Of a stretch of DNA of 64,000 nt, positions 36,833-39,800 are shown piece by piece. Origin of the DNA: Oculina patagonica. Taxonomy: Eukaryota. Position 1 is the first letter of the stretch. Every line of letters starts with the position of its first letter. Both the position numbers and the translations under genes were made by a program. The stretch lies in assembly GCF_052425735.1 (NCBI RefSeq), contig NC_135763.1, positions 11,718,001 to 11,782,000 of the forward strand. The letters run 5' to 3'. The notes below the pieces were generated by a model, which saw only the letters and a list, made by a program, of their open reading frames with translations, was not told the DNA's origin and did not search any database.

Positions 36833-39800
36833 TCATCTTTGTACGGCTTGTTCTCGTAACTTGGCTCTGGTTGGTCGACGCCTTTTTACGGCCGACTGCC
36901 TGACGCGGTTCTTCGTTAAGTGATTTAAACGAACAGGAGTAGCTGCGAAAAAGAAAATGAAATGAACTTTAGACCGTGAACACTAACCTCCCTGTGCAAA
37001 CCACAGGTGAACCACGTATAATGCAAACCACGGCTTAAGAGGCACGTTTTGATTGTCGTGCTTTTGAAGCGCTCTTAAATGATTTGCAGTTAAGTGGAGG
37101 TTTTCCAATTAATATCACATTTCTCTACTACTCAAAACCATATCACACCCTCCATCAGTTTTATTCCACATTCTTTTCCACATGCGGGTTGGCTGACTTA
37201 TGAAAATCTGCTGTAATGATATTAGGTTTGATAGACTGATTGATTGATTGATTGACTAATTAATCGATTGATTGATTGATTGACTATTTGATTGATTGCT
37301 GAGAGGAGTATTGTCTTTTTTTCTGGCAAATAGAGTTGTTCACAAGACAGTGCACGAAGAGCTTTTAAAATTCTGAGATTATTCTTTCCCAGTCGTTAAC
37401 ATCGTCACGCAACTCTCCTCGCTAAACAAAAAACAGAATGCAGAAGAATCTGTGCTGAAGATGATTCTGCATAATGTATGCACACAATCTACTCACCAGG
37501 GAGGTCAAAGGTGACTGCGTACTCCTCTACCCTATCATCTTCAACTGCGTCCAAGTCGTCATCTGTTTGACAATCATCACTGGTGAAGTCCTCTCCACTG
37601 TCCCCTCCTCTGGGGACGCGAGGCTCTAAACTAATCATATTGGCTGTTAAAACAGCTCTGAAATAGAGCGAGAGAAAAATAGAGAATTAAGAATTAGATG
37701 CCACTCTTTACACTAGATTGTAGGAGGCGCGGTGGCCTAATGGTTAGCGCACTCGGCTCCGAGTCGAATGGCCGAGGTTAAAGACCTGGCCGGGGCGCTG
37801 CGTTGTGTTCCTGGGAAAGCCACTTTACTCTCACAGTGCCTCTCTCCACCCATGTGTATAAATGGGTACCAGCGAATTTAGTGCTGGGGGTTAACACTGC
37901 GATGGACAAGCATCTCATCCAGGGGGGAGTAGCAATACACCTAGTCGCTTTATGCTACCGAAACCGGGATAAGCTCCGGCTGTACGGGCTCGGTCACAGA
38001 CTTTACACTAGATTGCAGGAACTAAAATGTTGTCATTGTTGTCATTGTCTTGCTGTCATTTTAAAATGAAAGTAAGACTGCAAGTCTGTTTCAAACGCTG
38101 ACAAGGCGGCTCGAACGTGCATCACGTGGTAAGGTTGTCTGTACCACGTGACGTTCAATGCCTGATCACGTGCCACAGAATGACGCGCCTTATGATGCAC
38201 GCTCGTACAGCCATTCCCCACAACAAGATATTTATCTACCTTCCCGCGAAAACACCTACTTCGCACGATTTTCCCTTAGGTCTATTTTATTCCCACTCTA
38301 TTTATACAGGCTTTAGCAAAATTCATTAAGAAACTAACCTTTGCTCTTGAAGCTCATAAAGCTGCTGCGTAAGAAGTCGTTTTTCGTCTTCTTCTCCTTC
38401 TAGACCATTTTCAACTAAATCATTATCCTGCCGTTAGAAAAACATCGTTAGAAAAGAGCTTCTAAAGGAGTCCAGACCATCGATGAAATGCAATCAAGGT
38501 CATAGACACGGAAGGTCACGCAACAATAACGTTTCCCTTACTAGTCACGCAAATCCAGAAATTCAACAAAAGGTTGGGGTATGCAATTTATTAGCAGGGG
38601 CATTAGGAGACGTGTTTTAAATTGAGAGGGCCAATAATAAGTTGACAAAATAAATCTTTTTTTTTTCAAAATGTGACTACGAAAAGAGAAACTAGTTGTA
38701 TCTCCACACCGATTCGTAAACATACAGAGAGAAACATTCAGAAGAAAAGATAATACTACACAAAGCCGATTATTAAAACTTACTTCTTCGTGGAGGTTCA
38801 ACATTGACAAGCGCTTGTGAGCCGTGTCCGACGCGTTATCGATTTCCCGGATGTTGTTGATTGTTGCTCGGATCTTGGATGACTGGCCTATAATCAGGGT
38901 TTCTAGGCATCTAGTAAAACATGACAAAAGTTGCAAAATGAAATTCATATCGAGAAGATGTCAGAAAATAAGAAATACAGTTCTGTACTTATAAAGATTG
39001 GGAGGCGCAGTGGCTCGCTACCCCTCGAGAGAACAACAGACCAAACAAAAGGAACTATGCCCCTAGCCCCAAAAACAACAACTGCTAAACTACAGAACAA
39101 GAAGCTTACGAGATCTGCTACACTACTGTTTAAAGGTGAAGTTCACTCCAGATTGGCCATTTATTTTCTTTAGGGCAATTAAAAGTTTTTACAAAGATAT
39201 GTTATTTTACAAAATTTCAGCCTCCAACGTGCGCTATAACCCTACGAAATCTTTCCCAAAACTCGACAACTGAACGCCGCCATCTTGGAGCTGGTAATGT
39301 ATGCGTGACGTCAAAGAGCTCAGCCTGCAGTTTGACGGGAAAATTTTACTAGTCGAAACTCCTTGTCTTTTGTATCTTTTGGAGCTCTGTTTGAGCAGAA
39401 TGGAGATGCACAAACAGGCTCTTGACAAGCAAAAGCCACTACGAAAAAACAAGGAGTTTCGAGTATTTAAATTTTCCCGCCAAACTTCAGGATAAGCTCT
39501 TTGACGTCACGCATACATTACCAGCTCCAAGATGGCGGCGTTCAGTTGTCGAGTTTTGGGAAAGATTTCGTAGGGTTATAGCGCACGTTGGAGGCTGAAA
39601 TTTTGGTGAATAACATATCTTTGTATAAACTTGTAATTGGTGTAAAGAAAATAAATGGCCATTCTGGAGTGAACTTCTCCTTTAAGTTTCAGAATCAGGA
39701 TTTAAGCGCCAGTTTATTACGCCACTAGGTTCCAAAAAGCCTTCACTCTACTTTACCAACTTTCAAAAAGACCACAACAAAGGAACACTTCCTTCGGACT

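Follow-up and report, generated by a model that had tools for sequence, protein, structure and literature searches.

Proteins that carry a capping protein interaction (CPI) motif are the main known means by which cells position and tune the actin capping protein (CP), and with each new family of hosts (twinfilin, Bsp1, Samd14, and a Legionella effector) a further branch of actin regulation has come into view. For class IX myosins (MYO9), the only role known to us is that of a processive, single-headed motor that delivers a RhoGAP domain. Here, a 64,000-nucleotide stretch of the Oculina patagonica genome (RefSeq assembly GCF_052425735.1, contig NC_135763.1, positions 11,718,001 to 11,782,000; referred to below as the window) was analyzed with a focus on the last coding exon of a MYO9 gene on its minus strand, which an initial annotation, made from the sequence alone, had read as encoding a CPI-like peptide. 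With modest confidence, we favor the reading that the C-terminal ~45 residues of this protein, encoded by the entire last exon together with the end of the exon before it, are a CPI motif of the CD2AP/CIN85 type that would bind CP via the CPI groove. Because the last-exon peptide closely resembles the motif of CD2AP, CKIP-1, and CARMIL, MYO9 probably binds CP, and class IX myosins are probably a new host family for a known motif.

The CPI consensus is LxHxTxxRPK(6x)P (Bruck 2006; PMC2897767). CPI peptides adopt an extended form with a bend at the mid-motif Pro, and they diverge in their C-terminal halves (PMC2897767). Mutation of the central Arg abolishes CP binding in CARMIL, CD2AP, and CKIP-1, and in CD2AP this residue, Arg493, bonds with Asp44, Ser41, and Tyr64 of CP-beta (Takeda et al., PMC2897767). 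Residues of individual hosts also contribute: Phe505 of CD2AP and Arg169 of CKIP-1 raise the affinity for CP (PMC2897767), and replacement of K987 and R989 of CARMIL1 with Ala abolishes CP regulation (PMC3784379). The consensus given in the initial annotation was compared with the retrieved CARMIL1, CKIP-1, and CD2AP peptides, and the residues listed there for the coral peptide (L, H, T, the essential R, and a basic RRPTR end) are all present in the translation. Leu at position 1 (36928-36926), Thr at position 5, the central Arg at position 8 (the R of HLTKNR), and the distal Pro are invariant in all orthologues.

To measure the resemblance, all 177,635 distinct PDB sequences were searched with four profiles. 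Profile A1, built without any pattern from four coral peptides, ranked CD2AP first and second (E values of 0.15 and 0.58). Profile A3, built from nine sequences of the two clades described below, matched the CD2AP peptides 3aa6_C (1.2e-5) and 3lk4_C (6.5e-4), followed by CKIP-1 (3aa1_C, 0.12) and a CD2AP-twinfilin chimera (0.65). When the N-terminal flank was included (profile A4), the values were 3.4e-6 for 3aa6_C and 1.2e-5 for 3lk4_C, with CARMIL1 (3lk2_T) at 0.45. All PDB matches of A3 and A4 at an E value of 10 or less are CP-bound CPI peptides. The A4 alignment to 3lk4_C runs ungapped over 28 residues and includes V.FD..A, so that VTFD..A of the coral protein pairs with VNFDDIA of CD2AP. 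The control profile, A5, was restricted to cnidarian-type sequences found by homology, none by pattern, and placed CD2AP at ranks 1, 2, and 4 (E values of 0.11 to 0.69). The ranking of CD2AP first is robust, and its formal significance hinges on two bilaterian-type tails. In sequence, the peptide is more like crystallized CP-bound peptides than anything else in the PDB, and profiles of the motif retrieve crystallographically validated CPI peptides first, which supports the CPI reading of the initial annotation. A refinement of that annotation is that the resemblance is closest to the CD2AP/CIN85 subtype and starts in the previous exon (VTFDLP). The third match of A5, at an E value of 0.39, was the start of an mDia1 FH2 construct (3o4x_E), ungapped against FDLPATPV.L..LTK.R...P.V.RRRP...KL. 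Although mDia1 is another barbed-end regulator, this likeness was taken as a probable coincidence of composition. Look-ups in the ESM Atlas returned generic RhoGAP clusters only.

The exon is part of the MYO9 transcript. An AG acceptor (...tttcgcAG) at 36944-36943 precedes the exon start at 36942, and the Ala codon at the junction consists of the G of 37497 and the CT of the terminal exon. Logan contigs from four RNA runs (X1, X2, X3, and X10, which carry three organism labels) were mapped onto 36300-42200 and gave seven GT..AG joints on the minus strand: 36942|37497, 37657|38339, 38426|38783, 38910|39804, 39935|40601, 40706|41193, and 41320|41899. The joint that attaches the terminal exon, 36942|37497, was seen in all four runs, and RNA depth is almost nil in the last intron (36943-37496). 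The spliced exons give an open frame that passes through RhoGAP helices, a coiled coil, and an acidic stretch into the last exon. Translation, acceptor, and RNA joints thus agree with the earlier assignment of a CPI-like peptide to the last MYO9 exon (36942-36833), and the acidic linker that had been placed before it is there. The link to the motor comes from a single X10 contig of 6,183 nt (depth 44), which holds the terminal exon at record positions 4521-5143 and the motor exons 62971-63058 and 62719-62829 at record positions 1418-1616; the joint 62829|62971 was present in four RNA runs. Because one contig carries both ends, there is strong evidence that the CPI-like peptide is carried on a motor-containing mRNA, with the limit that contigs are assemblies and fall short of single-molecule proof. 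The initial annotation had named absence of the exon from MYO9 transcripts as grounds for refutation, and the RNA evidence goes against such an absence.

One residue of the terminal exon differs between genome and RNA. At position 36895, the assembly encodes Ser (RVRQ-S-AVK), whereas four of four RNA runs (three organism labels) read G and encode Pro. Pro is found in every other coral sequence at this otherwise invariant position, and the assembly is either in error here or records a rare allele.

The CPI-like peptide is present in ~14 other coral-type sequences. A phmmer search with the 35-residue peptide against 1.84 billion representatives returned only three fragments, prokaryote-style open reading frame (ORF) calls on coral-type genomic contigs and none of them a full-length protein, and a scan of JGI metagenomes added ten more loci; a homologue search started from P0002 returned the query alone. 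Further comparison of these sequences showed several trends. First, the exon is kept as an exon: the AG acceptor and the frame are preserved in 11 of 11 genomic loci of other corals, and in these loci column identity is 0.88 in the exon versus 0.58 to 0.70 in the intron. Second, pairwise pN/pS (nonsynonymous over synonymous differences) between coral sequences is 0.1 to 0.3, with pS of 0.5 to 0.8, which is near-saturated. Judged from these comparisons, the peptide is under strong purifying selection. Third, the replacements are not scattered. They sit at the residue before L, at the x of LxH (N/R/V/H/T), at residues 9 and 10 (V/A and R/G), and at the far C terminus, whereas L, H, L, T, K, N, and R plus an 11-residue stretch are unchanged among corals, as is the KRRRPTR cluster. 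Across nine representative sequences, the columns L, L, T, K, R, RR, and P are invariant, and the positions marked x in the consensus vary (N/R/V/H/S/K/T). Conservation of L, H, T, and R had been suggested as a check, and L, T, and the essential R are indeed invariant in all orthologues found, with a single exception at H. Finally, the flanks are retained as well. The stretch AKLRE forms a conserved C-terminal flank inside the terminal exon, and the 10-residue N-terminal flank in the penultimate exon is kept in L001, L002, L009-L011, and P0004-P0008. L004 is a spliced metatranscriptome contig that spans RhoGAP to motif, and L004 and L009 represent one coral lineage with an earlier stop (...SKLREQAV*), in which the tail is two residues shorter and the motif intact. 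The flank is also kept in the NCBI model of Exaiptasia diaphana (P0006, "Unconventional myosin-IXa," partial), which runs through the conserved donor into the intron and therefore probably lacks an annotated terminal exon. As this example illustrates, the last MYO9 exon can escape current gene models.

In six frames, the translated window contains two instances of the core L.H.T..R and one of the extended pattern, at the terminal exon; from composition, the extended pattern is expected ~5e-4 times per 2,300-residue protein and ~2 times per proteome of 10^7 residues. A lone pattern match would be weak evidence, and the case is carried by conservation and profile similarity. In the AlphaFold2 model of the orthologue P0005, residues 272-336 have predicted local distance difference test (pLDDT) scores below 50 and no secondary structure (the alignment was shallow, and this is weak evidence). 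Low pLDDT over the acidic linker and the motif fits what is expected for a linear motif.

The motif in MYO9 tails does not appear to be specific to cnidarians, which is a second refinement of the initial annotation. Queries with L004 and then with a five-sequence alignment gave 125 MYO9-type tail fragments, and the survey consists of these fetched fragments. The homologue search covered candidates 0.55 to 1.75 times as long as the query, with stop-free references of up to 341 residues. A relative with 48% identity from a marine metatranscriptome, P0008, has the motif (LKHLTKTRPSPRRRKPPSRR), and here Pro follows the central Arg, as in the consensus, with the distal Pro at its canonical distance. 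Elsewhere among the 57,579 fetched residues, L.H.T..R was found in two more tails only, P0072 (LRHLTKNRTAGLPPRRLPSRF) and P0112. In a quick maximum-likelihood tree, these two group with P0100 and others with good support (98); the sister of this clade is an insect-like group (tails ending in -DEPIMV), and the window falls elsewhere, in the cnidarian-type clade (97). Their description as bilaterian-looking rests on the tree and on features that their tails have in common with the insect-like group; the contigs of P0008, P0072, and P0112 come from a marine metatranscriptome, a JGI metatranscriptome, and an ENA assembly. In both clades, the motif is placed after a coiled coil and an acidic block, and P0072 and P0112 have the identical HLTKNR hexamer at the same tail position, for which the chance of recurrence in another 500-residue tail is ~1.5e-5. 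An old motif with several losses is the simplest reading of this distribution. The fuller proposal, that the motif is ancestral and functional in class IX tails, predates the cnidarian-bilaterian split, and was lost, e.g., in the insect-like group, is put forward tentatively, as somewhat more doubtful than credible. If it were true, MYO9 would be a motorized regulator of CP, and at the places where the motor gathers it would tie the shutdown of Rho to the control of barbed-end capping; the motif may also sit unrecognized in other animal MYO9 proteins.

Two other observations concern the same tails. The candidate degenerate CPI sequences of the insect-like group (ELQRQKPIVMRS and ANRPNKQKPTKRR) were rejected, as the L/H/T register is lost. 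The bilaterian-type tails (P0019-P0099, P0072, and P0112) end in a conserved PDZ-ligand-like sequence, -[DE]xP[IV][MT]V, and the cnidarian-type tails, which end ~10 residues past the CPI-like motif, are without such an ending.

A number of points weigh against the CPI reading. First, the window copy departs from the strict consensus. Position 9, Pro in the consensus, keeps this residue in P0008 alone; the window copy has Val, the corals have Val or Ala, and Thr or Val is found in P0072 and P0112. Position 10, Lys in the consensus, is Arg in the window, a conservative change, and R, G, K, S, or A among orthologues. The distal Pro, invariant as it is, lies 8 residues on in the window and most corals, compared to 6 in the consensus; the spacing is 7 in L002, P0007, and P0072 and the canonical 6 in P0008 and P0112. 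His at position 3 is present in the window and in all orthologues but the coral-type P0007 (LSQLTKNRAKQPVGRRRPTR), in which Gln replaces it. Second, the E values of ~1e-5 need the two bilaterian-type tails, whose motif segments were located by the pattern L.H.T..R; the cnidarian-only profile A5 keeps CD2AP first and second, yet at E values of 0.11 to 0.19. Third, neither a single-sequence phmmer search of the PDB with the 35-residue peptide nor Pfam searches on the exon pieces found anything; the peptide is too short, and the HMMER filters drop weak matches. Fourth, the motif is not universal in class IX, since the insect-like group and the P0009 group lack it although their tails are complete. 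Finally, the CD2AP and CARMIL consensus alone binds CP weakly (260 nM to micromolar) without its C-terminal flanks (PMC2897767), and in the window protein only ~10 residues remain between the motif and the protein end.

The main rival, which we consider unlikely, is a conserved basic tail with another job, in which the likeness to CPI is coincidental. Candidate jobs are a monopartite nuclear localization signal (KRRRP), a tether to acidic phospholipids or F-actin, and a site for basophilic kinases and 14-3-3 (RRRPT). The invariant KRRRPTR cluster of corals suits generic nuclear localization and AGC-kinase patterns, and both the E values of ~0.1 to 0.2 to which the cnidarian-only profile is limited against CD2AP and the departures at P9, K10, and the spacing speak for a coincidence. 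However, a basic tail leaves unexplained why L, H, L, T, K, and N, which precede the basic cluster, are invariant, why variation is free at exactly the x positions of the consensus, why the ungapped 28-residue match to CD2AP takes in the N-terminal flank V.FD..A, and why CPI peptides are the top PDB matches in four of four profile searches.

A different reading of the departures is that the site was an ancestral CPI motif that has degenerated in corals, no longer binds CP usefully, and is kept for another partner or for mRNA or structural reasons. Val or Ala in place of Pro9, a variable residue 10, the one or two extra linker residues, and the Gln of one coral-type sequence all fit such decay, as does the fact that P0008, P0112, and P0072 are nearer to the canonical spacing. 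Val or Ala at position 9 is nevertheless compatible with CP binding, because CKIP-1, which was cocrystallized with CP and binds it, has Ala there (PMC2897767). Moreover, pN/pS of 0.1 to 0.3 at near-saturated pS and the invariance of L..LTKNR and RRRPTR in ~14 coral sequences point to continuing selection on the residues that define a CPI motif, and degeneration seems distinctly improbable. Least of all is to be expected from a shared partner other than CP that recognizes the CD2AP/CIN85-like V.FD..A....L.HLT.NR: the similarity to CD2AP does reach 10 residues N-terminal of the defined consensus, but that flank belongs to the CD2AP peptide crystallized on CP (3lk4_C), the profiles also match CKIP-1 and CARMIL1, whose relation to CD2AP is confined to the CPI motif, and we know of no partner other than CP for this stretch.

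If the tail is a CPI motif, as we favor, the MYO9 peptide would lie extended in the groove of the CP beta-subunit stalk. The invariant Arg of HLTKNR would form a salt bridge and hydrogen bonds to Asp44, Ser41, and Tyr64 of CP-beta, as Arg493 of CD2AP does, and the RR-x-P-[ST]-[RK] half-site would touch the N-stalk. Binding is predicted to lower, allosterically, the affinity of CP for barbed ends and for V-1/myotrophin, as in other CPI proteins. CP would then be gathered and regulated by MYO9 wherever this barbed-end-directed motor builds up, which is also where its RhoGAP would switch off Rho, and the net effect on CP may be uncapping or local recruitment and activation. Rho signaling drives formins and contractility, and barbed-end capping governs the dynamics of branched networks. 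A conserved CPI motif on the MYO9 tail would join the two in one molecule, and the MYO9 motor itself would place both controls. The idea is directly testable with the peptide and purified CP.

The gene itself is, by its sequence, a class IX myosin with motor, IQ, C1, and RhoGAP parts (Table 1). Minus-strand ORF pieces include a myosin helix and a converter-like ...YQMGRKKV, and the motor exon matches the motors of myosins VIIa, X, XV, and Va in the PDB with E values down to 6e-9. The RhoGAP domain of the coral orthologue L004 has human MYO9B (5c5s) as its best PDB match (6e-41), compared to 4e-27 for chimaerins. P0004, a near-identical protein of L004, is 81% identical to the tail in the window and carries the Pfam domains PF00130 (C1) and PF00620 (RhoGAP); P0005 carries PF00620. 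The N-terminal motor part of MYO9 lies outside the window, and the RA domain and the loop-2 insert lie outside it or at its edge.

Table 1. MYO9 features in the window, listed from the C-terminal end of the gene
Feature	Positions	Strand	Evidence or content
3' untranslated region	36300..36832	minus	RNA contigs unbroken from 36942 to 36300; continues below 36300, where the X10 contig is ~1 kb longer
Terminal coding exon	36833..36942	minus	Phase 1; frame from 36940 with 35 codons, then TGA stop at 36833-36835 (translation of 36833-36940)
CPI-like core	36866..36928	minus	L1, H3, T5, K6, central R8, then basic RR-x-P-T-R half-site; precisely the L...R span of the 21-residue core
Penultimate exon	37497..37657	minus	End of coiled coil, acidic linker, conserved N-terminal flank of CD2AP-like region
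Coiled-coil exons	38783-38910 and 38339-38426	minus	RNA joints; long helices in AlphaFold2 model of orthologue P0005, residues 184-270
RhoGAP exons, RNA supported	41193-41320, 40601-40706, 39804-39935	minus	Joints
RhoGAP upstream exons	~41899-42023, ~42291-42425	minus	Read from ORFs
RhoGAP region as a whole	39804..42425	minus	RNA joints and ORF pieces
C1 (phorbol-ester-type zinc finger) exons	42900..43822	minus	ORF pieces at ~43.7 and ~42.9 kb
IQ-motif neck exons	52307..53466	minus	IQ pattern at 52468-52436 and IQ-like repeats; ~53.4 and 52.5 kb
Myosin motor-domain exons	62971-63058 and 62719-62829	minus	RNA contig, translation, PDB matches

Other features of the window were also observed. Low-depth RNA contigs (word depth of 2 to 19) cover 57553-58014, with no joints to downstream exons listed. 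Four intronic stretches (37679-38072, 39255-39845, 40240-40633, and 60900-61299) have RNA-contig word depths in the thousands from many divergent contigs and are probably expressed dispersed repeats within MYO9 introns. A duplicated C1-RhoGAP cassette lies at 22826-24300 on the minus strand, with protein identity of 95 to 100% in places; its last exon is the counterpart of 38783-38910. The motif was sought behind this cassette (22.8 to 24.3 kb) without success, and nowhere else in the window is there another copy of the acidic exon or of the CPI-like one. An intronless 279-residue ORF at 18223-19062 (plus strand) combines a coiled coil with a C-terminal half that is TRAF/MATH-like, and a frame-broken second copy of it lies 14 kb away at 32086-32764 (plus strand); the two copies flank the duplicated cassette.

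The known systems closest to the coral protein are class IX myosins and CPI proteins. Human MYO9A and MYO9B and Caenorhabditis elegans HUM-7 share the motor, IQ, C1, and RhoGAP parts, with the RhoGAP closest to that of MYO9B. They differ in that a CPI motif is undescribed for them in the literature searched (subscription-only papers lay outside it), and no paper in that literature treats a CPI motif together with "myo9" or "myosin IX," in line with the initial annotation, which knew of none in class IX. The only protein found there with a CPI motif and a RhoGAP domain in one polypeptide is Dictyostelium CARMIL-GAP (PMC9270954); it is a CARMIL with an inserted GAP rather than a myosin, of unrelated architecture and lineage. 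CARMIL1-3, which have a CPI plus a CARMIL-specific interaction (CSI) motif (3lk2, 3lk3, 3aa0, and 2kz7), share L.H.TK.R, so that the K and R of HLTKNR are the counterparts of K987 and R989 in CARMIL1, and an upstream ELP/DLP is common to CARMIL1 and MYO9. However, MYO9 is without a CSI motif or a membrane-binding domain after the motif, and the profile match is weak (0.45). CKIP-1 (PLEKHO1, 3aa1), a PH-domain membrane adaptor, has an RRPPTR half-site compared to RRRPTR here, and its Ala at position 9 is matched by the Ala or Val of corals, whereas it differs in its canonical 6-residue spacing and Lys10. The best match is with CD2AP/CIN85 (SH3KBP1; 3aa6 and 3lk4). CD2AP is an SH3 adaptor compared to the motor-RhoGAP host here, and the window copy has Val9, Arg10, two extra linker residues, and no Phe. 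Nonetheless, both motifs lie in disordered regions that adjoin a coiled coil, and the bilaterian-type copies P0072 and P0112 share RRLP.RF and RRKPSKF with a Phe. P0112 matches CD2AP gap-free, including the Phe equivalent to Phe505, and the profile aligns with CD2AP without gaps over 28 residues as V.FD..A....L.HLT.NR...P.RR.P.R.

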